From contig NW_004798120.1 of NCBI RefSeq assembly GCF_000002075.1, positions 107,848 to 171,847 of the forward strand: DNA of 64,000 bases. Reading direction: 5' to 3'. This document shows, piece after piece, positions 15,300-47,374 of this stretch. The stretch comes from Aplysia californica (Eukaryota). Both the position numbers and the translations under genes were made by a program. The notes beneath the pieces are model-generated. The model had not been told where the DNA came from, did not search any database, and saw only the letters and a list, made by a program, of their open reading frames with translations. The first letter of the stretch is position 1, and each line of letters opens with the position of its first letter.

Positions 15300-18200
15300 A
15301 CCTCCCAAGCCCACTACTAGACTGGGCCAAAGAAAGTGGAAGGAGCGGCCTTTTAGACAGCCCGACCGACGACGAACTACAAAAAATAGACTTTAAAAAG
15401 GCACAGAAAAAAAATCCAAAAAGAACAGACGAACGACAACAGCAACGGAAACGACAGTGACGGATAGGAAGAGGACATCAAACGACGTAGTACAACAGAA
15501 CAGATTTCAACTACTCAGCGGAACTGACGACGATAGCGACGGTGACAAGAACAGAAAAAAGAAATTAGCAAGGACAGAAGACAAAGTAGAAAACATGACG
15601 ACTGACAGTGACTCATCTGAATTCTTTTAATGATGTTCCCATTGTTTAATTCTTTTTCCTTGAGCACCACAGGATGAATGAACTGAAAGTAATGACACTG
15701 AACACAAGAGGAACGAATGGTAAGCTGCCCCAACTAACACACCTCATTACCACACACAAGCCAGACTTTTTATTACTACAAGAAACTAACATAGACACCG
15801 AATACAAAGCACAAGCATACACACACTCACTAGGGCTCAGTAAAGGCATTTTCAGTCTAGGTAAATTTTGCAGAGGAACAGCCATACTACAAACATCCAA
15901 CAGATGACACATCACACAACACACAACAAACGAGACAGGTAGAATAACCACCGCAACGATCACCGACAAGACAGACACCTACAAATTGGTCAACATTTAC
16001 GCACCGGCTGTCCCAAACACCCGAACAAGTTTTTACGAAGAGCTACAGAGTACACTCAGCACATCTACACACAAACTCATACTGGCGGGAGATTTCAACG
16101 TCACTTAAGACGACAGAGACATAATGGGGACACAGGTAGGAAAAGGGCGACAAGGCAGAACAACACTACAACAAATAATAGACACACACTATCTGAAAGA
16201 TAGCCACAGAGAAACACACGTAAACAAAAATGATACAACGCACAACAATTCTGGAATAGATAGAGCAACCAGGATAGACAGAATCTACGTACACGACACT
16301 GACAAAATCGCACAGTGCGAACACTTAGACCACACGTTGACATTCACAGACCATAAAGCAGTAGTAACAACAATAAACACAAACAACACGCAGCCGAGAC
16401 GATCACCGCACTGGAAATTTAACAACACACTACTCGACAACGAAGAATACACAACCATGATTACAGAAACGATCAAACGACACACACAAAGACTACAAAC
16501 TAACAATGCTAGAGAGACATGGGACAACTTAAAACGTATCATTAAACTGGACACAATATACAAAGCCAAAGAGATCTGTAGAAGTAGGAGACATAGACAG
16601 CAACAATTAGAATACAGAATAGAACTCGCAAAACAGTTAGGGTTACAAGAAACGCAAAACATAGTGGAATTCAGGGAAGAGTTAGAAGAACTAAATCAAA
16701 TAAAATATAGAGGAGCTCGCATTCGAACTAAATACCCAACAATAAAAGACGAAAAACCAACACCAGTATACCTGGCTTTGGAACAAAACATACAAAAACA
16801 TAGAATGATAACAGCAATTACAGACGCACAAGGCAATACACAAAAAGACACACATAAAATAACAGACGCCTTTCAAAATTTCTACAGCGCACTTTACGCT
16901 GAACAAGATACTGACGAATCAGTACAAGACAATTACATGCAACACGCCGCACAACTCACACACGACCAACAACAAATCCTCGAGACAGATATTTCCATAA
17001 CACACCTGCAAAACGCACTCAACTCGATGAAGAAAAACACCTCGCCCGGCCCTGATGGCTTGACAGTCGAGTTTTACCTCGCTTTCTTCCCCGTTTTGGC
17101 CCCCCTCTTTACAGCGATGGTAAAAGAAAGCTATGAGTTAGAATGTTTGCCGGAGTCACTAAACTTATCGTACATATCCCTCATTCCGAAAAACTCAGGC
17201 TCCCCTCTGGGAATGAAAAACTACCGTCCCATATCTTTATTAAACGTAGACTACAAAATTATCTCCAAGACCCTAACGAACAAGTTGAGACCGTTCATGC
17301 AACACGTAATACACACAGACCAAGCCTGCGCAGTACACGGTATATAGAACAATACAAGATCACAACCACACACTTAGGGACATTATCACATACGCAGAAG
17401 ACAAACAGTTAGACACATGCATACTTTCCCTAGACCAGACTAAGGCATTTGACAGAGTGTCTCATTCGTTTTTACACAAAGTTTTAGAAAGAAGCAATTT
17501 AGGCCCAAAGTTTCAGAAATGGATTCAAATATTATATAAAAAAACACAATCAAAAATTCTAGTTAACCATACCCTGTCAGATGCCTTCAATATAGGAAGA
17601 TCAGTTCGACAAGGAGACTCCCTAAGCCCACTTTTATATGTATTAAGTTTAGAACCTTTACTAAATTCAATCCGAAAAGACCCACAGATTGCAGGTATCA
17701 AACTCCCGGGAGGGGGGGAACAAAAGTTAATAGCGTTCGCGGACGACACACATTTTTCCCCAACTAATTCTAAATCTATACTTCAGATCGTTAATCATTT
17801 TCGTTATTTTGGCAGGGGGAGCGTATCAGAAATTAATGAAACAAAAGGTCAGGCGATAAAGTTAGGAAAATGGAAAGATAGGGCAAACGATCCGATCCGA
17901 TTAAATTGGGTGCAAGAAATAAAAATTTTCGGCAATTACTATAGGAAATCAAGAGACCAAAACTCCCCAACTAAATAGAATGACCTTGTCGAGCAGATCC
18001 AAACCCTCTTACCTAAACTCTATTACAAACAGACATCAATTTCCGGCCGCAGTATTTTAATCAACACACTCGTCATTCCAAAAATTAACTACGTCACACA
18101 AACGATAGACCCACCACCCCAGTTTCTCAAACGAATAAAACGACTCATCAGACAATTTATTTTCAAAGGAACTATCCAACGCATCAGACATACAACCTTA

Positions 18201-19503
18201 ATACAGAGCAAGTTCAACGGAGGGATACAGTTACAAGACATAGAGACAAAAACACAAGCCTATATAGATTACAACACATTAGGAACATTGCGAACAACAA
18301 AAAAGACACCCCTTAGCTCACTACTACATAGGATTACACGTCACAAACCCAACACCGATGGACAACACAATCCCACACTTTTTCGGACGACAACCTACAT
18401 TTTACAAAACATGCCTTCGAGCATACAGACAACACGCCAAATTACTCACTCTCGCACGCACAACGAAAGACATATACACAACGCTAGTAAAACGACAAGC
18501 AACACCATTATACGATCAAATTAAAAGAGGTAGAATATACGCAATCCTAGACTTTTCGGAAACATTTCAAAATTTACACATCAAAGACACAACACCCTTC
18601 CAAAAACAGATCACGTATAGGATACTTTACAACAACACCCCCACAACTCAAGCAAAGAAACACGGAAAAGATAGGTGTAAAATATGTAGACGAAACGAAC
18701 GAGAAACAGAAGAACATATATTCTACACATGCCCGCACATTCAACAGACCAAACACGCACTAGCAAAATTACTCAACACAAACCCAGACACACAGGTAGA
18801 CATATACAAAGCAATCTTTCTAAACATACTCCCACCACAAACAACAGACAACCACAGCATTAGACTTCAAATCTTAGCAGCGTACAGAGAAGTCATTTGG
18901 CAAGTTAGACTACAAACAGCCTTTAACGACACTACCCACACACCCAACACTATTTCGCAATATTTTCAACAGAAAATTACTTACACCTTTAAAACAGAAA
19001 AAAATGGGCAGTATTTGAAAGATATTTGAGCTGTGGCGAGAGTGAGTGAGTAAATGATTTGAAAGCAAGCAAAACAACGAGGACAGAGACCGAACGGACG
19101 AATTGTGTTAGACAAGACGAGACTGCTCTGTGAGCACAGAGTAACAACGACTCGACAACCCAGGGGTCGAAAGGCGACGAGTGGAAGAGAACACAGCTCA
19201 GGAATAAACGAAATAAAATGAATTATTAAATGGAATATGTACATGGAACGAACGAGAATGAATGAAAAATCATTTATGTGTATGCAAGAGGGGGAGGGGG
19301 AAGGGGTACGAAAGAAAAAGCGGACGGGGATGAGCCGCAAGTGTATTTGTCGAATGAATCTGTGTGAGAAAGAAGGGGACACTAATGAGCCCCACAGTGA
19401 ATGACTCTTGTGGTGTTATGTTTTTGTTGTAAAACCCCCCAAAAATAAAATAAAGGCTCAAATGAAGCCCAAGGGGAAGGGAAAAAAAAAAAGAAAAAAA
19501 AAA
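15300..19503 (+). mobile_element. Tx1/L1-clade LINE, decayed: ORF1 3' end, disrupted ORF2 (15674-19029), 3' UTR and poly(A)
   Basis: APE endonuclease motifs LNTRG, LQET, NIYAP, GDFN, RIDRIY, TDH. RT motifs SPGPDGL..EFY, NYRPISLLNVDYKI, DQTKAFDRVSH, VRQGDSLSPLLY, FADD. C-terminal CKIC..ETEEHIFYTC zinc knuckle. Internal stops and frameshifts at ~15905, ~16105, ~17345, ~17976 and ~18260-18350. AATAAA ~19444 and A-tail 19482-19503. Confidence 0.95.
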
Positions 19504-30647: not shown

Positions 30648-33262
30648 TTACTTTTACTTTTACTTTTTTCTTCCGCTTGTACCCTGGGGTGTCGCGGGGA
30701 GACACGGGCGTCTGTCTGCAGCAAGTCGTGTGGCCTGTAGGAGGGACATCCCGTGAGCTCTAAGGGTGTCTGCCACAGATTCACTCCATCGTCGCCTTGG
30801 TCTTCCTCTGGCTCTCCATCCAGAATATTTAGTGTTCTATGCTCTCAGAGCTGGATGGTTTTAGGGCATCCGCGTGAGGTGTCCGAACCACTTGACCTTT
30901 TGTTTTTCAATGTGTGATAGGACTGGTGTTGCTCCCACGGTGTCCCTTATGACTTTATTTTTAATTTGGTCTCTTCTTGTTTTGTTGACCGCTCTTCTTA
31001 AGCATTTCATCTCGCATGTGACCTGTTTCCTCTCTTAGGGCTTTTGATAGGGACCATGTCTGGCACTGGTATGTGAGGGTTGGAAGGAAAATGGCGTTGA
31101 TGAGCTTCGCCTTGGTGCTCATGGGGACATTGGGATGTTTCAGGAGAGGGCCGAGTTGGTAGCTGACTGCGTTGGCTCTCTGGCATCTAGTCTCTATTTC
31201 TCGATCTAATTTTCCATTTTCTGTGAAATTGCTGCCCGAGTATTTTAATTCTCTGCTTTGTTTTAGTTGGGATCCATTGATGTTGATATCCACTTTGCCT
31301 GGTCTCCTGTTAATTGTCATGACTTCTGTCTTGCTAATACTGATCTTCATGCCATATTTTTGGCAGCTCGCATTTAGTTGGTTCATATGCTCCTGTAGCT
31401 GGATCTTGTTGTTAATCATTGCCAGGTCGTCTGCAAACATGAGTTCGTTGAGTGCCTCTGGGTCTGGATTGGCCTCTTTTGTTATCTGGTCTATGTAGAT
31501 CACGAAGAGCAGAGGGGAGAGATTCTGACTCCGGATGTTACTGGAAACCAGTCTGATGTTCCACTGGTAGTTCGGACAGCGCTTCTGCTGTTGGCATAGA
31601 TAGCCCTGATGTTGTCTAGCAGTTGTCCCTTGATGTCGTACTGCTCTAAGATCTTCCATAGCTTGTTTCTATTTACTCGATCAAAGGCTTTTTCTTGATC
31701 CACAAATACGAGATGAAGATCTTTGTCGTGTTCCAAAGCCCTCTCACACAGTTGTCGGAGTGCGAAGATTGCATCAGTGCACCCTCTTCCTTTTCTAAAA
31801 CCAAACTGGGCGTCACTGAGAAGACGTTCGGCTTTTGCGCGAGTGCGTCGCTCTAGGATTTTTGCATACATTTTCCCCGCATGGCTGAGAAGAGATATGC
31901 CCCTATAGGTGTTGCAGTTGCAGTCTTTCTTGCTGCTCTTTTTTTCCATATTAGCACCACTATCGCATTTTGCCAGTCTGCTGGTACTTTTCTTTCTTTC
32001 CATGCTTTCTGGAAGACGATTGTAAGCCAATGTATTCCGGTTTCGCCGCAGGCAAGGATGGCTTCGGTTGTGATGCCATCGTCTCCAGCTGCCTTGTTCT
32101 TTGGACTAGTCTTCAGTGCTTCTCTCACTTCACTCTCCAGGGTGGTAGGTTCTGAGTGCTCAGGGTAGTTGGCGGTGGAGGGGCACTGTGTGTTTTGTGC
32201 CTGTACTCCTGATGGGTTTAGTAGTTCTTGAAAATATTCTTCCCATCTTTTTATTATTCCTTTCTCTTCGTGTAGAGCTTCTCAATTAGTATTGTTGATG
32301 ACAGTGGTGGGTACATAGGGTTCGTCTCTCACTTTCATTGTCTTTACCTTCTTGTAGAACTCTCTTGGTGAGGTCTTGCAGGTTTCACTTAGTTTTTCGC
32401 CATACTGGGTCCATGACTTTTCTTTTGATGTTATAACGACTTTCTTGCTGTGTCTTCTTGCAAGTCTATATTTAATGTAGTCCTCTTCGTTTTTTTACTT
32501 GACCAATACATTATACAGTCTCCTTTTTTCCTTGATAGCATCCCTAACTTGGCTGTTGCTTTTCTGTGTTTTCCTCTTGTTTTCTTGGTACCGCAGACTT
32601 CTTTCATTGTGTCCAGGAGAGTTGCTTTGAAGGTATCCCAAGCTTCCTCTACGGTTAGTATTGTAGAGTTGATAGAGCCTAGCTTTTCATTTAGCGTGCT
32701 TCTGATCTGAGCCTGCACCTGATCATCTCCAAGTTTATGCCTATTTAGTCTCTCTTGCTGTCTTTTATGGTTTTTTGGTTTTCTTTCTTTCTTGGTGGTC
32801 AACTTTGTGATGATTGGCCTGTGGTCTGTGTCCAGATCTGCATTGGAGATGGCTCTTGAGTCTGTGATTGTGATCCGCAGTCGTGATCTCGTTAATATGA
32901 AGTCGATCTGTGATGAGACCATGATGTTGTTCCATCTGTATCAGGTGTAGATCTGAGAGGCCCGGTCCTGGAAGAAGGTGTTGGTGGTGAATAAGTCGTG
33001 CTCTGCACACAGTTCCAATATATGATTGCCGTTATGATTGCATGGTGTTCTGTGGTCACTGTGTGGACCCAGGTGTTTTTTCCACGGTGCTCTTCTCTCT
33101 CCGACTCTTCCGTTGAAGTCTCCCATTACATAAAAGTCTTCCTCGTCTGGAGTGCTGCTAATTAAGTCCGAGAGTTGTTCGAAGAAAGAGTCCTTTTCTT
33201 TGTCTGAGTAGGAGTCGTTGCACGGTGCATACACCTGGATGTAGTTTGTGGTCCTTTTGCCC
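30648..33262 (-). mobile_element. RTE-clade LINE, 5'-truncated and decayed
   Basis: Endonuclease motifs QVYAP, MGDFNGRVG, NTFF, SQIDFIL, TDH. RT motifs KAAGDDGI, YRGISLLSHAGKMYAKIL, QFGFRKGRGCTDAIFALRQL, FVDQEKAFDRV, LSPLLF, LMFADD. Multiple frameshifts; (AAAGTA)n tail at ~30648-30668. Confidence 0.95.
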
Positions 33263-36742: not shown

Positions 36743-37252
36743 TGTCAAGTGACATCATTGTCTTGTAGTTGTAGTCATGTAGCCTCATTGTGACTCATTA
36801 CTCATTGTCATTGTATGTGTAGATCTAGATCTAGATCTAGTCTAGATTCTAGAATTCTAGATTCTAATCTAGATCTAGAAAAATCTATGTATGTAGCCTC
36901 CATACCCCTGTACTACATCTAGAGCTAGATCTAAATATCTAGAATCTGCAGGGTGCTTGCCCCCCCCCCCCCCCCCCCCCCGATACCCCCCATGAGCCCC
37001 ATGTTAGAAACTTGTAAGTCAAATATTACTTCCCACTGGTCCTTGATCTAGATTCTAGATGTCTAGTTCTGTTTTTAAACATCTATAACTCAATAACTAT
37101 TGATTTGCGGCAAAAATGAAGGCCATATTCGTGTTCAGCATGCAAAATACCACTAGAGAAAAAAAGTATATATATAATTATATAGATCTATAAGATCTAG
37201 AATCTAGATCTAGCTATCTAGATCTAGATCTAGATCTAGTTCTAGATCTAGA
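36650..37252. repeat. Clusters of self-complementary (TCTAGA/AGATCT)n repeats
   Basis: Arrays at 36651-36671, 36819-36878, ~36917-36942, ~37046-37066 and 37184-37252; another at 38948-38968. Confidence 0.9.
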
Positions 37253-37542
37253 TATTATATAAACGTGTACATGAGAAGAAACGGGTGCATGACTAAAAAA
37301 AAACATTATTCAGGATTGAACTTACTCACTTTCTGTTTCAACGGCTGCAAAAAAAATTTTGGTTAAAGTTATAATTAACTATTTTTATATTGTCATTTCC
37401 CGATTTTTTAAAGCTCATTTTATAATCTTTTTGTTGTTCTCACAGTGTTTATGTTCCTCTCATCCTACTTGATTGATATAAATTATATTATGTTTTATAA
37501 TTCCCGTCAGGTCTATCTCTGGCACAAAGTGTTGCTGCGAAG

Positions 37543-38565
37543 ATGTCAAGTTACGAATCGATCAGGTTAAAGAACCTGGAAGACAACAAGCGAGTGCTGG
37601 CTTCCTTTGGGCTGCTGGACCCGGTGAGTGAGAATTGTGATCTAATTCTGCTTAAAAAGTCTTAAGGGCTTATTTTTATTATTTATAGTATACATCATTT
37701 TTAACATTAGCGTGTGTTGCAGATAAATTATACGAAGTGACTATTTCTCCGAATGTTCGGAGAAATAGTGCTGATCTTTATTTCTCCGAACGGTTTCCGG
37801 CTTCCGGTCTCGTGATTTTTTGTCTATTTATTTTTTGCTAGAGTTTGGCGCCAACTTTCATTCTGCCTCTGGCCTCTGGTCTGGGAAGGAACACCGCATG
37901 GCAAGCCCGCCTACAGACAACCTTCAGTAACACCCACCACCATCATGCACATGTACACACACTAACTAAACATGACCAGTGGGCAACTTTTGAACGTATG
38001 ACGAGCTGAGCTGTGGACGGAGAGACAGTGTGAGTGAAAGAGCGGGTGAAAGGAAGAATGTGCGAGTGTATCCACAGGCGACAGCAACTACAAGACAAGA
38101 CGACGACACCGACCCCCTGGCCTGGTCCACAGCTCACGAAAGAAAGGAATGCAGCTCAGGCAGTGTTTTGCCTATATTATTGTCCATGGTTCGCAGGGTG
38201 CAAAGGAAAGAATGATATTTTCTTTGTGTGTGCCTGGAGGGAGGGGGTGGGGTATGAAGAAAGTCATGCGGACAGGGATGAGCCGCGGGAGAGAACACGG
38301 GAATTGAATGAGTGAGGGAAACTGAAAGAGACGAACGACTCATGAGCCCTGGAGTGAATGGATCCTGTGTTTCTATTTTTGTATACTTTGAACTGTTACT
38401 GAATACANNNNNNNNNNNNNNNNNNNNNNNNNNNNNNNNNNNNNNNNNNNNNNNNNNNNNNNNNNNNNNNNNNNNNNNNNNNNNNNNNNNNNNNNNNNNN
38501 NNNNNNNNNNNNNNNNNNNNNNNNNNNNNNNNNNNNNNNCCACACACAGACACACTCACACACGC

Positions 38566-38596
<31 letters not shown>

Positions 38597-41500
38597 GGAG
38601 CAAATTTTTGGGTCTATATCTATTTCAATTTTCAAGAGCTAGTCTAGATGAGATTTTTAGATGAGTGTAAAAACGTGAAAAAGAAAGGTTTCACAACAGA
38701 AAGAAATCAAAATTAGAACAGCCCATAAACAACAACAAACATTAACAAATAAGGGCGTGTGTCCACCTGTCCGAAGAAGATGGGCTGTTTTAACCCTAAA
38801 TGTGCGTAATAAAAAAAAAAGGACAGGATATTACATGTAAATTATGGAATCACACACATTAAGGGGCTTTGCCAGTGTCAGTACATTGGTCGCAGCAGTG
38901 ACAAACGCAGATGTCAGTTCTATGTGTCGTTATCAATAACCCTCCGTAGATCTAGATCTAGATCTAGACAGCACACGAGTGAACACAACACATTACGTTT
39001 AAGAGCAGCACCCTTCATAGGCAACACGCCATATCTGTAGCGAAAAACTGTTTGGAATTGTAGCATTTCTTTATATAAATATTTACTGCGGACATTTTTT
39101 GGACCGCTTAAACCATATTGTATACGAACAATCTTTGGTAGGCTTATACTATAATTATAGATCTATATAATATCCTAAATTTGCGAGAAAGGATGTGATT
39201 TCAGAGTGTTCGGAGAAATAGTGCCCAGCTTTATTTTCCCGAACGTTCGGAGAAATAGTGCCCAGCTTTATTTTCCCGAACGTTCGGAGAAATAGTGCCG
39301 GCCTAAATTATACTGGCATGTGTGTGGCATTAGAACCCAACTGCAGGTCACAATCCAGAGGAAATTGTATTAATTTTAACGTGTTTTGGCATGTTTAACG
39401 TTAGAAGTCATGAAATCTGGAAATTCTATTGAGTATAGGTTTTTAACTATTTTCATGTTTTGGTTTAGAAAGAAATTAAATGAGTGTGGGTCAGGTGTTA
39501 TGCACTGGTCCATTTATTGAGTCGTTGACAGTGCTGTAGCTTCCTGTGTACGCTTGATATTATAAGGGAGAACTGAGGCTGTATTTTGTATTGTAGTGTC
39601 ACTGTGCTATAATCAACCTCCTTGCAGTTTGGAATGAAATATTTACTTGTTTGAACATGTGTTTATAACTTGACACAGATCAGAAGAAATCTTTCTTTTG
39701 TGCTAAGTTTAAGACTGTGTGTCTTGTTATTCTGGTTCTTTACTTGAATTAACAAACCATCCCCAGTTCAAGTCCTTGCCCAGCATTGTAAGGCAGAGGA
39801 AGATACCATCAGCAAAACCAGAATCTGCCAAAAGGAAACGAAGCCGGCCCGTTGATAATACAGATTTTGTTGGGGGATCTATCTATGGAAGTAGGAGGAA
39901 GTCGGCTCGGATTCAGGGAAAGGTAATTAAAAATTGACATATATATATGTTCTCCACAGGTTGTGACTATTCTCTCAGTACTTCTCTGACAAATGGTTTA
40001 TATATTTGACATGTCATAATATAGTTAACAGTATGTCAGAAGGCTGGCTGTACTGTATACCATTTTACTGTCAGCTGCGAAAGTAGCTAAATCTCTCTTT
40101 TTTGTACTCACACATCATGGGTGTTTTGTTTTGTCCTTTAGTGAGTGTGTAGGGATGATATTGTAGCCTTCAACATAGCTGGTTGTAAGAGGTCTACAGA
40201 TACTGATGTTGGAAACTCTGAAGAAATGTATGGTTTTGTGACTTTTTGTTAAATTGTGTGCAATATTGGGAGTTTTATTTCCTCTCGCCAGGACGTAGCT
40301 GAGTATGGACTTAACGATTCTGCTTTAGATGAACCCGAGGACGACAGAGAGAACTATACCCCGAGAGTCCCAGCAAACCGACCAAACTTCTATGGAGCTG
40401 TGCCAGGTTAGTATATTATCCCCTTCTTTATTCTATTTATAACAGCTGCTCATATACAGAATTTTGATAGGTGTGGTTTAATGTGAGTAAAATCCCTCTC
40501 AGACAAACACAGATCAGTTTGAAGGCATTCTTGGTCTGAGTGAAAGAACATAAAAAAAATGAGAACAGATTATTCATCGTGTTGTGTTTGAACAAAATAC
40601 TTATAAATGCATTATAATTTTCCTCGGAGATTGATTCCTTATAGGATATTTCTCATTTATAAAGTTTGCTCACACGATTGCATCACCAAAAACTGTTTTA
40701 GTTTTCACTACTTTTGTTATTGTTTTAACTTTTGGTTATATTAAAGAAGAAAAATTAGGATGGATATGTCTAATTGACATAGAGTTGAGAGTCATGCTAT
40801 CACTACAGTTGAAAGAAATCAGAGGTATAGAAACATTTTCTGTGAGAAGAAGAAACTTTTCCTTTTTCGTCTTTCTGGTGGGATATAGTGTCCACACACC
40901 CAGGTTTGACCCTGACTGGCAAGGTCTTGGTTATCAGCTGTACACAGTCTGCCTGATTTTCTTTGGCCATCTAACATTTTAAGAAAAATATTAAAAGAAT
41001 TTTTAAAAGTAAAGACTCTAACAGCAAAACCTCACATCACTCCCCTCCCTGACCCAGCCCCTTCCTTTTCCCCCCTTATGGCTTTTGTAATAGAGCTGAC
41101 AAATGTAACTACTAATGATTTTGTTTCAGATGTGTCCGTGGGTACGGTGTGGTGGACCAGGATTGAGTGTTGTCGAGACGGAGTGCATAGGTATGTACTC
41201 ATAGACTTAATCTGTTTTGTAGATTCTCTTGCTGAACAGATTGTTGATTGTTGCATGTTCTGACTTGTCTTTGTTGACCTTTTTGCCTTTTGTTTGTCTG
41301 TTTTTCCGGAATAAATTTGAAGAATGCAGATAGTTTGTTAAGACATTTTGAGCACTGTTCTGGGATGATGAAAAAGGTGGGTGGGAGGAGGGCAATTTGT
41401 GGTTGCTTTATTATCAGATGGGAACTTTGAGCTTAGAGACAATAAGAGGTCCTTAGAATCTTATGCTTTACTTTTAAAAGTTTTTTCTTACATCTGCATA

Positions 41501-44500
41501 TCATGATATACATGTTGTGGTCTGTTACCAAAGGCACAGTGGTGTCTGTTGTCAGTTGTATTTTTTACATTTTTAGTCTGTTATTCTTTTTTTTTTGGAA
41601 AGAGAATGGTGAAATTCCTAGATGTCCCTTATTAACTCTTGTATGTTGTATTTTATTTTGTACATTTGTTGTGCAAAATTGTTACACCACTTTCTGTAGT
41701 GTACGAGAAGTCATGGTAAGGCTCTTCATCTTTCTCACAATGAAATTTGATTCCCTTGTTTGTTTGAAATATATTTTATTGAGCATCTTTTTTTTTTTTT
41801 TTGCTGCGTCAATTCTTTTCAAGCTCTCCTATGTTCTAAATTTTGTTTACAGAAATGAAGAAAACATGCTCAGTGGTTAAGCTGCACTCCACATTTATTA
41901 ACCCAATCCTTGCTTTTGCGACCCGAAGAGACATGCACCATGCTGTTCCAATACTCTTTAGTGCTATGTCGCTGACTCATTACTAATATAATATGAATAA
42001 GTCCTATTTTGGCAACCCTTAACTCCTGAGCTACATAAGGATTGGTGTTATTATATCATATTCTTTTTATATGATTTTTTTATTTTTGTTGTTTCTTGTG
42101 AACAGACCCACAGTTGCTGGCATTCACGGAGGGGAAGGGGGAGCTTACTCCATCGCTCTGTCTGGAGGATACGAAGACGATGTGGACCTGGGAGAGTGTT
42201 TCACATACACAGGAGAAGGTCAGTCATGTTTCAAAAACTCAAAAGACAGAAATCAGCCTCTCTTTTATTCTGTATATATAAATATTTAGATTATGTGTTA
42301 CAGCTTAGAGAGCCTGTTTGTGTCTTGCACTGATTGTCCTGATCATAGCAATAGATCTGAGATAGTTACTAATTGATAACGTTATATTGTACAAACGCAA
42401 CATTTGGGTTTTTGGTAAGTGGTCTTGTCCGGTATGTGGGACCACTGAGTCAAATGGGTGGCATGAACTTAAAGCCTTGAAAGAGGTGTTGATCCCACAC
42501 CATCCTATGAAGGCCTACACGTCTGTGACCTTGTGAATGCTGTTTAGATGTGCAAGTGGGAAAAGCTATTTGATAAAATTCAACAGCAATACAGTCACTT
42601 TAAGGGGAAAGTGCAAACAAAGGTTATGGCCTAAATAATGCTTTTGTCTTTTTAGCAACCTGTAAGTTCTTTCATCTTTAACTTAAGTTTGCATTTGAGA
42701 TTAGCAATGGTTTATATTTTAAAAAATTGTATTTCCTTTTGTTTGTAAACAAAGGATACTTTCTCTTGTTTGTGCGTTTCAACATTGCATCTTAATGTTT
42801 TTTCCTTATCTTCTTTGACCTCCTGATAATGATTGGTGGGTTTAACTTTCGTATTTATCGTATATTATTGAAATAGAACCAATGGTTTATTTGTTTTGAA
42901 GTGTGGATGTTGATGAAAAAAAAACTTACTAACATGGCATGGAAAAGTTGTACATCTTGTCCAATTAACATATCATGATTTATACCTAAATTTTTTTTTT
43001 GGGGGGGGGTGGCTCTCAAGTTCATCTGCCCTATAGGTGATGTATTACAATACGGTACAGTATGTATCTACTTTTGGTGAAGACGATACTGATCTTGTAT
43101 TTAATCTTTATCTTTTTGTTTGTATTTTTTTACAGGTGGTCGAGACCTCAAAGGCACAAAGACAAATCCCAAGGTATGTGAGATGGTACTCGACTTGTAT
43201 CTCACTAGAGCAAAAGTCAACCTTATGACTTGAGCAAAAGTGAAAATGTCTCGTTATTTCGATTTTTCAGTACGTGAAACAAACCCCTGCTGTTGAGAAT
43301 ACAAAGCTAGTNNNNNNNNNNNNNNNNNNNNNNNNNNNNNNNNNNNNNNNNNNNNNNNNNNNNNNNNNNNNNNNNNNNNNNNNNNNNNNNNNNNNNNNNN
43401 NNNNNNNNNNNNNNNNNNNNNNNNNNNNNNNNNNNNNNNNNNGTGACCGGCTGATGCATGACTGACTGAAAATTACCCTTTTTTCAGAACCTGAGAACGG
43501 CCCCACAGTCCAAGGATCAGACATTGACGCGGGGAAACCTTGCACTCAGTCGGAACGTAGAGACCAAGAACCCTGTACGTGTGATTCGTGGCTACAAGCT
43601 GGACAGTCCGTTCGCCCCAGAGGAGGGTTATCGCTATGATGGCAAGTCGGCATATTTTACTTTGAATTTTACTGTTATCTTCATTTGGGTTGGATAACAC
43701 TTTAGGAAAAATGTGTCACGACGCGGTAGAATCAGGCGCTTGTCAATTTTCGAGCATCTGGAGTTATTGGTATGATCTTAAAGCTTGTTCATTTGACCAT
43801 CTTTTGATGAAAAAAAATACATGCCTTTCGTGAATAAAAGTTGACAGACATATTTGCGATTGAAGGAGGTTGGGATTGCCTGGTTTCAGAGGTAAAATTA
43901 TTGAGAAAATGACCCCCAAAGTTTGGTTATTTCCAAAGCTTGAGAGTCCTTGGAGACTGAAATTTTACATTTGTTGTGCCTTTAGTCAATGTTTTTCAGT
44001 AAAACTCACACAGAAATATGTAAATATTTTTTAATGGACATTAAAGGTGTTGAGCCAAACAGCAAAAATTAGAAAAAAGAATTGTCAAACTGGAGGAACA
44101 ACACCGATACAGTAGAACATGACTACGGTATACAGTAGCGGACCATCCCTACAGCGGGACCTTACCGGTGCCCCTTTTTTTTCCGATGAAAACATAATTA
44201 CCCGTGTTTGGGTTTAACATGACAAGGAAAGGCCTGAACTTGGATATAGCGGGAGAGATCGAGCAAGCTCTAGCTGGGGGATGGGGGGCTGTAGGCGGGC
44301 TCCAAACAGACAGTCAGCGGTGCGGCGTTGTGATTGGCCAGTCCAGTGATGAGTGAGGTGTGGCAGGCAGCAGAAGAGATGGTGTGGAGAGACTCGTTAC
44401 GTGAGCCACTCCAAAAGTGATGTGCCATAGCCCTACTCGCGGCGCACAAGCAGTGGAATTTTAGTTGCTGTAGGAGGTTCCCTGCCGAGCGCCTTCTTAC

Positions 44501-47030
44501 GTTGGGGTCACGGGGGGTCAGCTCCCTATGGCCGCTCTGTCTGGGCTGACTTAAATTTTTGATACTTTTCAACATAACATTTTAGGTGTATCCTTGTATT
44601 TACGGTAATTATCACTTGATGCACCCAAAGCACGCATTTCTGCTCTTGAGACTTAAAAAAGAACGGACATTGTAACTTGTCTGGTTATTTTGTTAGACAC
44701 GCTGAAGTCGGCAATGCTAAATTGTAAAAAATTTGACAAGTGTGAATGAAAAAAAATCTATAAAAATAACGGCCCTACAAAAACTGTCACTCTTTTGGAA
44801 CACGAACGACACAACATTGGTGCAGATACTCAGAAAAGATGGTATCTGCGCATAAAATAGAAAGGAAGGGGGGGCAGAAAGTGGAGACGAAAGCGGACGA
44901 TAGAACATTGTTAGAAAGCAGGAAAGGATGTCGAAATTTTTTTTAGAGAAGATAAATTATTATAATCATCAATATTATTGTTATTATTATTATTATCAAT
45001 ATTATTATTATCAATATTATTATCAGTATATTGTATCAATGGACTGACATTGTTGTTGATACATTACAGTTTGTATGAATAAAGGTCAAAGTTAACCGGT
45101 ACCCCTGTTCCTCCCTGCAGGCCTGTACTCGGTGGAGAAGTGCTGGTTCACCACCGGTCTCTCGGGCCACGGTGTCTGGAAGTTTGCTCTCAAGCGCTGT
45201 GATGACCAGGCACCTCCCTCCTGGCAGTTTGTCTCGGTGAGTGCAACTCCCTCTTTGGTTTCCATAGAAATATCATTGTTAAATACTTAGAATTGCTTGG
45301 ATCCAGAGTATCCTTGCAGGCGGCACATGTCCTTAGCTGCTAATCTCTCCTCTCCAGCGTCCATCCCGGGGTCTTCCTGCTAATTGTCTCCATGAGGAGC
45401 CGGTATGAGACACGCCTGCCCACTCCTCGGAGTGTTAAAATACAAGGTGTCTAAACAAAAGGGGCGGACCCTTTTAAAGGGCAATAAGTTAGTTATCTTT
45501 GCAACAATTTTGAGCAAAACTTTGAGCGAATTTAAAATTCAACCAAGGGGATGTTAAATTTTTCAATATAAAGAAAACTAATGTGCTCAAGAAATATCAA
45601 GTTTTAAACATTTCTACCAAAAGTTGAAAGAAGTAAAACATAGATCTTTAAAAATCAACAAACCACCCTTTAAGTATGGCACTTTTATCATCTTGTTTCA
45701 ACTGTGGTGGCGGATTGTTGGAGGGTGCCACAGATAGGCCATAGGCTTTTTCCATGCAGTGAACGATCATTGTCATGTCCGCCAGTCCATGTACTTCTTT
45801 TTGATCAAACCTTAGAACCCCCCCCCCCCCCCCCCCCCCCCGCGGGGCAGTGCCACTGACTGAAATGTCTTTAGGCCATTCCCAAAGGGGGGGGGGGGCA
45901 TTTCTCATTCTAGTGCACAGTAGTATTGTAAATGGGCTGATCTAACAATGTCATTCTCATAACTGTGCCTGAACTAGAACAGGGAATTGCTGCTTTTTCT
46001 TTCCTATTCCTTACCATCGTCATTTCCTTTACTTCTTTTGTATGTTTGTCACATTCTTGTGACCTGCTATTTCCGGGGTGCCCTGATAGTCGAAGCAGAC
46101 TTTGTGCTGTTGAAGCTAGAGAGGTGAGCAGATTAAGTCTGATTCCCTGTAAGGACTTCTCTGTTGATATCCACCCCTTTGCGCTCATATGACCTTTTAT
46201 GCAGTTGGGAGCGCTGTAAAACCTCTACTAAAACTAAACAAAAACCTTAGAAAATATCAGCTGTCTTGTTTTTGGTTTTAGTAAGAGTTTTACGGCATTT
46301 GCAACACAATAAGTGTCGAAGATTTGAGGTGTTACAAGAGAGTAACAAACACAAAAAAGAAGGAGAGGAGATAAAGACGATAGACGTTTGACAGGAAAGA
46401 AGAAGCAAACCACACCAGAGCTCCCACCCACCAACCACCCACCAACTGTCTTGATGTTACCTGATTTCTATTTGACTCCTGAGGGAAAAGTGAATTGTCT
46501 CAGACTGTGACTTTACTACTAGTGAGTGGTTGAAGGGTGCTATAGTCTTTATCTCACCTCCTTTTTTTTTACATGTTTGTTACTCTCTTGCATCATCTCT
46601 AGTCTTCGACACTTATTTGACCTTATTGTGTTGCAAGTTCCATAAAACACTTACTAAAACAAACAATGTGACTCTACTTTATTTTCCCCATAAACAGGAG
46701 CCAAATTCTCCTGCCAAAGCTACAGATGGAGGTCTGGCTGTTCAGGACAAAACATCTACTACCTCACATGGAAAAGATTCCATCAACGGTACCACAGATG
46801 ACAGGCTTGAGACGCCAGCGAATAAAGACAAAGACGACACGACCACAGAGAAAAATGTGGCTCCTGTTGAAGATAAAGCTCCTCTTCGTGATGAGGAGCC
46901 GGAGGAGGTCGAGGAAACTACTTTGTCGCAGCAGCCAGATGTGTCAACGCTGATGGAAGCGGGTTCGGACCTCGGCAGTTCACAAAGCTCAACAGTCAGT
47001 GAAGTGGCGAAAGGGAGGACAGAAGATTAG
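37543..47030 (+). CDS. Stand-alone SRA/YDG-domain (UHRF1-like methyl-CpG reader) protein, 388 aa; exons 37543-37623, 39767-39922, 40292-40406, 41130-41190, 42106-42218, 43136-43173, 43488-43641, 45121-45236, 46698-47030
   Basis: Nine phase-consistent exons total 1167 nt. The SRA domain reads [163 protein letters not shown]. It is flanked by a ~110-aa N-terminus and an acidic, low-complexity tail. Confidence 0.93.
37733..39303. mobile_element. Mutator (MULE)-like non-autonomous element in an SRA-gene intron
   Basis: Perfect 9-bp TSD TAAATTATA at 37724-37732 and 39304-39312. Inverted sub-terminal arrays of ACTATTTCTCCGAA(C/T)GTTCGG at both ends. Confidence 0.8.
37885..38407 (+). mobile_element. 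Diverged Tx1-family LINE 3' fragment nested in the MULE-like element
   Basis: Shares ordered blocks with 18890-19420: tggcaag..ctaca.ac..cctt, tgagctgtgg, gcggac.gggatgagccgc, atgagccc..agtgaatg. Confidence 0.65.
45816..46240 (+). mobile_element. Short retroposon family B copy, tail-to-tail with a family-A copy (46268-46445, -)
   Basis: Homologous to 9934-10328; ends cctctactaaaactaaa. Confidence 0.85.
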
Positions 47031-47080
47031 TTGAGGCTTCTGTCTTAGGGCTTCCTTTATAATTTTTAGAGAAGTCATTT

Positions 47081-47374
47081 AGGGACCGTTCGCAAATGAC
47101 GTCAGCTAAAATTTTGCCAAAAATGCCCCCCACATCATCTTCTGTTACCTTTCCCAGGACCCCCCCCCCCCCTCCGACCCCCCCGTTGACGTCAACATTT
47201 AGATAGAACTTGTACAGGATGCATTTTGTATTTACACCTTTGATCTTTATTTTAAATAAGAACGTAAAGCTATTGTTGATTAAATAGTACAACAAAGAAA
47301 TACCTGGAGTGTCAAATTATTTATTAACAACTTTAACCAATTTCTTGAGCTGACGTCATTTGTGAATGGTCCCT
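47081..47374. mobile_element. MITE about 50 nt downstream of the SRA stop codon
   Basis: TIRs AGGGACCGTTCGCAAATGACGTCAGC / GCTGACGTCATTTGTGAATGGTCCCT. Confidence 0.85.

Follow-up and report, generated by a model that had tools for sequence, protein, structure and literature searches.

An SRA-only protein of Aplysia californica with a CDCA7-type N-terminal helix: a candidate hemimethyl-CpG reader and HELLS adaptor

The window analysed here is a stretch of 64,000 nucleotides (nt) of the Aplysia californica genome (NCBI RefSeq assembly GCF_000002075.1, contig NW_004798120.1, positions 107,848 to 171,847 of the forward strand); positions are those of the window unless a contig or locus is named. 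At 37543-47030 on the plus strand, the window carries a nine-exon gene for a protein of 388 residues with an N-terminal amphipathic helix and a single SRA domain. With a probability of roughly 0.5, we read the product as a nuclear adaptor, in which the SRA domain reads hemimethylated CpG and a helix of the CDCA7 type docks the remodeller HELLS.

The proposed mechanism is as follows: the SRA domain would flip out 5-methylcytosine (5mC) and would prefer hemimethylated CpG, as the SRA domain of UHRF1 does, in a protein that has no ligase or histone-reading domains; the N-terminal helix would dock onto the CC2/C7BH helix at the N-terminus of HELLS, as the CDCA7 helix does; and HELLS would be brought to, and perhaps activated at, hemimethylated DNA, in parallel to CDCA7 with its zinc-finger reader. 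Judged from sequence likeness and from the analogy with CDCA7, HELLS binding by the N-terminal helix stands at about even odds.

The SRA domain and the N-terminal helix

The gene model was searched exon by exon, and the whole-protein analyses were carried out with the database record P0178 (388 residues), which is identical to the joined translation at every residue. The NCBI name of this record, "E3 ubiquitin-protein ligase UHRF1 [Aplysia californica]", is wrong, because SAD_SRA alone is detected by Pfam: residues 113-269 match SAD_SRA (PF02182) positions 2-148 (172 bits, E 7e-51, above the curated cut-off), and neither UBL, TTD, PHD or RING nor zf-4CXXC_R1 was found by Pfam in P0178. An SRA domain alone was also detected in seven relatives (mussel, acorn worm, sea urchin, amphioxus, sponge, chytrid, truffle). 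A sequence-only reading of this DNA had described the protein as SRA-only and distinct from canonical UHRF1, and both parts of that description hold: a separate UHRF1, with TTD and SRA, is encoded on contig C269.

An AlphaFold2 model of P0178 was built from a 50-sequence alignment. The predicted local distance difference test (pLDDT) score was above 90 over most of the SRA domain and about 65 in the finger loop. The closest solved sequences were SRA domains of UHRF1 (E 3e-41), and the model superposed best on 3f8j_B, the mouse UHRF1 SRA bound to hemimethylated CpG (root-mean-square deviation 2.1 Å, 182 columns, 48% identity, template modelling score on the target 0.72). Residue numbering was aligned to human UHRF1 (hUHRF1) and conservation was counted in 50 relatives, as follows:

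hUHRF1 Y466, P0178 Y160: conserved in 50/50
hUHRF1 Y478, P0178 Y172: Y in 38/50, F in 12/50
hUHRF1 D469, P0178 D163: D in 42/50, N in 8/50
hUHRF1 V446, P0178 V141: conserved in 48/50
hUHRF1 N489 and R491, P0178 N189 and R191: conserved in 50/50, as is the whole N189-L190-R191

From the 2008 structures, we take Y466 and Y478 of hUHRF1 to be the stacking residues and D469 the hydrogen-bond partner of 5mC; V446 is the thumb, and N489 and R491 are the finger. The alignment and the counts bear out the earlier claim that the 5mC-pocket, thumb and finger positions are kept, and the SRA motifs quoted with that claim are all present in the translation, YDG included. Two differences were observed: the finger is N-L-R in P0178 and N-K-R in UHRF1, with six extra residues (GTKTNPK) ahead of it, and a UHRF1 insertion of about 15 residues ahead of the last strands is missing in P0178. 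Binding of hemimethylated CpG by base flipping is likely for this SRA domain, because of the residue conservation, the predicted fold and the precedent of Cryptococcus neoformans, to which we return below.

Relatives were collected by sequence searches. When exon 7 was searched with phmmer against 1.84 billion representatives, 540 matches were returned, many of them in proteins of 300-540 residues, in which the matched segment occupies the same relative place. Members recovered in a search with one full-length relative were from bivalves, gastropods, cephalopods, annelids, a brachiopod, a nemertean, hemichordates, all echinoderm classes, amphioxus, corals, a jellyfish, the sponge Sycon, Daphnia, a barnacle, thrips, sea spiders, Macrostomum and chytrid fungi; there was no vertebrate in the best 120 matches of this search. 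Additional fungal members were found in Cutaneotrichosporon, Calocera, Tulasnella, Tuber, Peziza and Geoglossum. The family is present in ascomycete and basidiomycete fungi as well as in chytrids, and the restriction to invertebrates proposed earlier was too narrow.

The family signature, as found in P0178, is a helix Y-E-x-x-R-x-x-N-[IL]-x-x-N-x-x-x-L-x-x-L-G followed by a single SRA domain. The N-terminal helix (cut-off 20 bits, in residues 1-40) was detected in 129 of 162 relatives of 280-560 residues, which confirms its presupposed conservation in orthologues; P0178 itself scores 55 bits at residue 1. Y4, E5, R8, N15 and L19 were invariant in the 50-sequence alignment, and N11 (44/50), [IL]12, L22 and G23 (48/50) were nearly invariant; positions 4, 8, 11/12, 15, 19 and 22 would lie on one helix face, as for helix-helix packing. 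The helix (residues 3-21) was modelled with a pLDDT of 94-96; the linker after it is disordered, and lone beta-bridges were present in the model at residues 33 and 277. About 35 residues ahead of the SRA domain, a motif R-R-[RK]-S-x-R-[LI]-x-G-K (39890-39922, residues 69-79) is shared by animals and fungi (R71 in 48/50, S73 in 47/50, R75 in 48/50 and G78 in 38/50).

The remaining components of the methylation machinery were located in the whole genome (927,310,431 bases, 4332 contigs), as follows:

Contig C269, minus strand: canonical UHRF1, with TTD at 256507-258771 (the sole TTD match in the genome) and SRA exons at 241959-249859
Contig C748: CDCA7, with zf-4CXXC_R1 at 88944-89078 (the sole zf-4CXXC_R1 match in the genome)
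Contig C98: DNMT1, with RFD at 1139592-1141707
Contig C92, minus strand: HELLS, found by its motif-I exon and confirmed by its CC2 exon

Because UHRF1, CDCA7, DNMT1 and HELLS are all present elsewhere, the SRA-only gene is an addition to a full methylation toolkit and not a degenerate UHRF1.

A helix profile (30 positions, 114 family members) was run against the six-frame open reading frames (ORFs; 1713 in total) of a 40-kb stretch lying upstream of the zinc-finger exon of Aplysia CDCA7. One ORF was matched, the exon L019:2308-2475 (G000:C748), with 22.1 bits and E 7.7e-6; the runner-up had 5.5 bits. The earlier claim of a CDCA7-type helix is upheld by this match. The Aplysia CDCA7 helix reads YENLRKRNLEDNKAV-LAKLM; when the splice sites are applied, the exon reads DDVCHYENLRKRNLEDNKAV and the next exon LAKLMCDIKDQ.... 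All the family-invariant positions are kept and G23 alone is lost. An intron interrupts the CDCA7 helix (L019:2392-2451 and about 2900-2962) after ...NLEDNKAV, whereas the helix of the SRA gene is encoded by a single exon. Because of where the CDCA7 exon lies in its gene and its likeness to the published description, we infer that it encodes the published HELLS-binding helix (HLBH).

In Xenopus extracts, CDCA7 without the helix no longer binds HELLS, and HELLS without amino acids 63-96 (CC2, 'C7BH') no longer binds CDCA7 (PMC11343034). Human CDCA7 requires residues 108-143 for HELLS binding and residues 108-176 for ATPase activation, and the CDCA7 helix is confidently predicted by itself (PMC11417364). 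The need of the CDCA7 helix for HELLS binding, stated in the sequence-only reading, is therefore documented in the literature (PMC11343034, PMC11417364). According to a proposal based on cryo-electron microscopy in 2025, helix and lobe 1 compete for CC2, so that autoinhibition is relieved (PMC12885070). The partner helix is kept in Aplysia HELLS: the exon L051:6678-6887(-) aligns to residues 59-117 of human HELLS (9z04, E 5.6e-4), the region of CC2, the CDCA7-binding helix. Long ORFs (102-158 residues) lie between the CC2 and SNF2 exons of this gene (L051; G000:C92:593886-595161, minus strand) and look like a mobile element inserted in an intron.

A layout like that of CDCA7 had also been claimed. 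The N-terminal helix was matched, as above; the basic RRSxR linker said to be shared with CDCA7 was not, since a profile of the RRRSxRLxGK motif, which is a real motif of the SRA family, reached at most 8 bits in the CDCA7 locus, on the wrong strand and with nothing above noise.

Further searches for the helix were performed as follows. A genome search with the alignment A1 returned this gene and UHRF1 only, with a first-look filter under which helix-only matches fall. A homologue search with residues 1-40 returned only 10 close heterobranch relatives, under a strict word filter that leaves it silent on CDCA7 and WDR76. With residues 1-80, a protein atlas search gave no usable match by features and noise by structure, and no solved chain with the helix was found in a profile search of PDB sequences. 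A scan of the genome with the pattern Y-E-x-x-R-x-x-N-[ILVMF]-x-x-[NK] gave 167 matches, against 181 in a reversed control; 13 candidates were inspected, none of which extends past the pattern, WDR76 was not located in the Aplysia genome, and only the SRA gene and CDCA7 were convincing among the matches. The sequence Y-E-A-S-R-[IM]-R-N-V-E-A was found as a multi-copy element at about 20 G000 loci (e.g. C23:1565449, C95:835784, C129:845880); this probably represents a family of repeats, whose likeness to the helix motif is likely accidental.

Three long relatives, P0071, P0105 (from the basidiomycete Cylindrobasidium) and P0116, carry DUF7923 and CCCH zinc fingers together with the SRA domain, and an internal helix motif was observed in P0105 and P0116. 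They may be genuine fusions, or else gene models that were merged. As candidate fusions to HELLS, the long fungal relatives were rejected: they are DUF7923 and CCCH fusions instead and give no Rosetta-stone evidence.

Gene structure and transcripts

Exons were found by reading the three plus-strand frames over 37500-47100 and by checking splice signals. The nine exons join to 1167 nt (388 codons and a stop) with no internal stop, so the intact spliced ORF of 388 residues described earlier stands. Donors and acceptors are GT-AG in every intron except intron 7 (43642-45120), whose donor gcaagt, of the usual GC-AG class, is the sole non-GT donor of the gene. The features are listed below with the evidence for each in brackets:

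37511..37542, plus strand: 5' untranslated part of the first coding exon (acceptor cccgtcag|G; X8 RNA contig)
37543..37623, plus strand: coding sequence of exon 1, residues 1-27, with the N-terminal amphipathic helix, residues 3-21 (translation, AlphaFold2, helix profile)
38408..38539, no strand: assembly gap within intron 1, coding sequence unaffected (RNA joint from 37622 to 39766, GT..AG)
39767..39922, plus strand: exon 2, residues 28-79, with the conserved FKSLPSIV, the basic KRKRSRP and the near-invariant R71/S73/R75 motif (column counts)
40292..40406, plus strand: exon 3, acidic linker and start of the SRA, RPNFYGAVP (SAD_SRA begins at residue 113)
41130..41190, plus strand: exon 4, first SRA strands (Pfam; junctions in the RNA contig)
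42106..42218, plus strand: exon 5, SRA thumb (V141) and 5mC pocket (Y160, D163, Y172) (Pfam E 2e-9)
43136..43173, plus strand: exon 6, start of the finger loop (exon 5-6 joint in X8 and X9)
43312..43442, no strand: assembly gap within intron 6, coding sequence unaffected (X9 contig, continuous Pfam profile)
43488..43641, plus strand: exon 7, finger N189-L190-R191 through YRYDG, with the GC donor at its end (Pfam E 4e-11)
45121..45236, plus strand: exon 8, C-terminal SRA strands, LYSVEKCW...PPSWQFVS (Pfam positions 120-148; identical to P0178)
46698..47030, plus strand: exon 9, acidic, Ser/Thr-rich disordered tail of 110 residues and the stop (no RING; pLDDT below 50 from residue 290)

No credible Pfam domain was found in exon 9, where the only match was a sub-threshold DUF3306 (E 0.29). 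The SAD_SRA profile is unbroken across the exons: exon 5 covers positions 28-65, exon 6 (12 residues) fills positions 66-74, exon 7 covers 75-118 and exon 8 covers 120-148. There is no hidden exon in either assembly gap, because RNA bridges both, the Pfam profile is continuous and the translation equals P0178.

Transcript evidence was obtained from two RNA contigs. The X8 contig (1407 nt) joins 37622 to 39766 and then runs through exons 2, 3, 4, 5 and 6, each joint being GT..AG; in the X9 contig, the end of exon 6 (43173) is followed directly by the initial 30 nt of exon 7. Letters 140-251 of the X8 contig correspond to 37511-37622, with an acceptor at 37510/37511, and letters 1-139 (its 5' end) match nothing in 37250-37510. 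The first coding exon is hence not the first exon of the gene: an upstream exon of at least 139 nt exists, and is presumably untranslated. RNA was placed directly on exons 1-6 only in the X8 contig, and for the remainder its length adds up: 139 + 32 + 1167 + 69 = 1407, which leaves no space for further coding exons. No extra exons encoding PHD, TTD or RING were found in the transcripts, as the sequence-only reading had supposed.

Two side observations were made near the gene. Repeats in intron 1 (37650-39440) are covered at very high depth by RNA on both strands, in which variant letters are numerous, and a loose poly(A) end lies among them at 38308; they look like expressed copies of short interspersed or other transposable elements from other sites in the genome, and not like part of the gene. 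Upstream, the ORFs at 16124-19026 (plus strand) and 30961-32027 (minus strand) match reverse transcriptase (RVT_1, zf-RVT) and are fragments of retrotransposons without long terminal repeats.

Weighing the adaptor reading

Several points weigh against the adaptor reading. The helix match spans only 17-20 residues, and its E value of 7.7e-6 becomes about 0.2 when rescaled to the whole six-frame genome; it therefore has weight only as a test aimed at the CDCA7 locus. The HLBH was mapped by deletion and not residue by residue, so that sequence likeness does not prove the same partner. As the finger loop is 6 residues longer than that of UHRF1, a preference for hemimethylated DNA is not guaranteed. 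The UHRF1 SRA is unable to read hemimethylated CpG in the nucleosome core, which the CDCA7 finger can do (PMC11343034); by analogy, an adaptor linking this SRA domain to HELLS would see linker or naked DNA only, because the UHRF1 SRA cannot read core sites, and the two adaptors would cover different substrates for the same reason. In Cryptococcus, deletion of uhf1 alone has almost no effect on 5mC. The confident helix and the beta-bridges of the model leave it open that the N-terminus might dock onto its own SRA domain. Finally, the polyA RNA runs X21 and X22 had zero reads over the exons, so expression is not universal.

The explanation nearest to the adaptor reading keeps the SRA domain as a hemimethyl-CpG reader and has the helix unrelated to HELLS, serving another partner, dimerisation, or a lid or structural role on the SRA domain; we hold this to be possible, if rather unlikely. 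It draws on the pLDDT of 94-96 reached by the helix in a monomer model and on the beta-bridges at residues 33 and 277, which suggest that the stretch following it docks alongside the SRA domain. The motif presumably occurs in WDR76 as well. WDR76 has many partners, among them SPIN1, histones and CBX proteins (PMC11331135). Against this, the same helix is found in the same genome on the quite different reader of CDCA7, and this argues for a portable docking module rather than an SRA-specific element; the CDCA7 helix is likewise confidently predicted alone (PMC11417364) and is yet needed for HELLS binding (PMC11343034), and HELLS homologues co-purify with WDR76 in human, Neurospora and yeast (PMC4714748, PMC11331135). 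We put forward tentatively, at somewhat less than even odds, that the Y-E-x-x-R-x-x-N-I-x-x-N-x-x-x-L helix is a portable HELLS-docking module, carried by at least two hemimethyl-CpG readers (zf-4CXXC_R1 and SRA) and possibly by WDR76 as a third.

A role as a ligase-free competitor or buffer of UHRF1 on hemimethylated CpG, which would bring about no ubiquitylation of H3 or PAF15 and would damp or time the recruitment of DNMT1, would suit a protein with a conserved SRA pocket and finger and with RING, TTD and PHD missing, in a genome that also encodes canonical UHRF1 and DNMT1. We consider it improbable as the full account: it leaves the invariant N-terminal helix and its CDCA7 identity unexplained, and the C. 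neoformans SRA-only protein promotes 5mC and does not oppose it (10.1101/149385). Such a role is compatible with HELLS recruitment, and the two are not exclusive. It is very improbable that the 388-residue model is a piece of a larger UHRF1-like gene, with UBL, TTD, PHD and RING exons outside the model or in the gaps. The unplaced 5' exon of at least 139 nt and the two assembly gaps in the gene would allow for this; the length sum of the 1407-nt contig leaves no space for such exons, RNA bridges both gaps, in 129 relatives from many phyla the protein starts only a few residues away from the helix and stops shortly past the SRA domain, the only TTD in the genome is on C269, and the large upstream ORFs are retrotransposon fragments. 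The fragment explanation was rejected on the RNA contigs and the orthologues.

Known systems and significance

CDCA7 is the closest parallel: like the SRA protein, it is short, has no enzymatic domain and combines a docking helix with a hemimethylated-CpG reader (a predicted function in the case of the SRA domain). The two helices are nearly the same in Aplysia (Y-E-x-x-R-x-x-N-L-E-D-N-K-x-V-L-A). The reader of CDCA7 is a 4CXXC zinc finger, which acts in the major groove and on the nucleosome core, whereas that of the SRA protein would flip the base and contact both grooves; in addition, the helix of the SRA protein is at the extreme N-terminus and uninterrupted by an intron, and the basic motif after the helix was not matched in CDCA7. 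With UHRF1 and UHRF2, the protein shares an SRA domain (aligned by structure, it is 43-49% identical to UHRF1 SRA chains that have been solved), its fold, the 5mC pocket, the thumb valine and the Asn/Arg finger residues. Unlike them, it has no UBL, tandem Tudor, PHD or RING, hence no histone reading and no ubiquitin ligase, and its N-terminal helix is missing in UHRF1.

The WDR76/Cmr1 N-terminus presumably has a Y-E-x-x-R-x-x-N-I-x-x-N helix and then an RRSxRL motif; WDR76 differs in having a WD40 propeller as reader or scaffold. It co-purifies with HELLS, MUS-30 and Irc5 (in human, Neurospora and yeast; PMC4714748, PMC11331135), which would fit a shared docking helix. In C. neoformans, Uhrf1/Uhf1 (CNAG_00677) has the same SRA-only architecture; its binding is selective for hemimethylated DNA, and it supports 5mC alongside H3K9 methylation (bioRxiv 10.1101/149385). 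Among the relatives of Cryptococcus, the family member of the tremellomycete Cutaneotrichosporon carries the N-terminal helix. CNAG_00677 differs in that its partner is DNMT5 and not DNMT1, and it has no reported link to a HELLS homologue.

SRA-only 'UHRF1' homologues have been recorded in a survey as lacking RING (PMC10538959), and our literature search found no paper that links SRA-only UHRF1 proteins, or WDR76, with the HLBH. The gene was already annotated, though misnamed; judging from its sequence, what is new would be the joining of a HELLS adaptor to another kind of reader. In current accounts, CDCA7 is the single adaptor by which HELLS, and no other remodeller, is tied to maintenance methylation, and the UHRF1 SRA is the other hemimethyl-CpG reader, acting via ubiquitin. 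If the adaptor reading is true, an SRA domain and a HELLS-binding helix in one protein would connect the CDCA7 and UHRF1 halves of this scheme without a ligase. It would give a function to many 'UHRF1-like' SRA-only genes that have so far been marked only as lacking RING, would suggest how the Cryptococcus SRA-only protein supports DNMT5, and would make the helix a sequence motif for finding further HELLS clients. Should the helix be a portable HELLS-docking module, a pair of hemimethylation sensors would work in parallel for one remodeller in most invertebrates and many fungi, one reading CpGs on the nucleosome surface and the other reading linker or naked DNA via base flipping, and the second sensor would have been lost in vertebrates.

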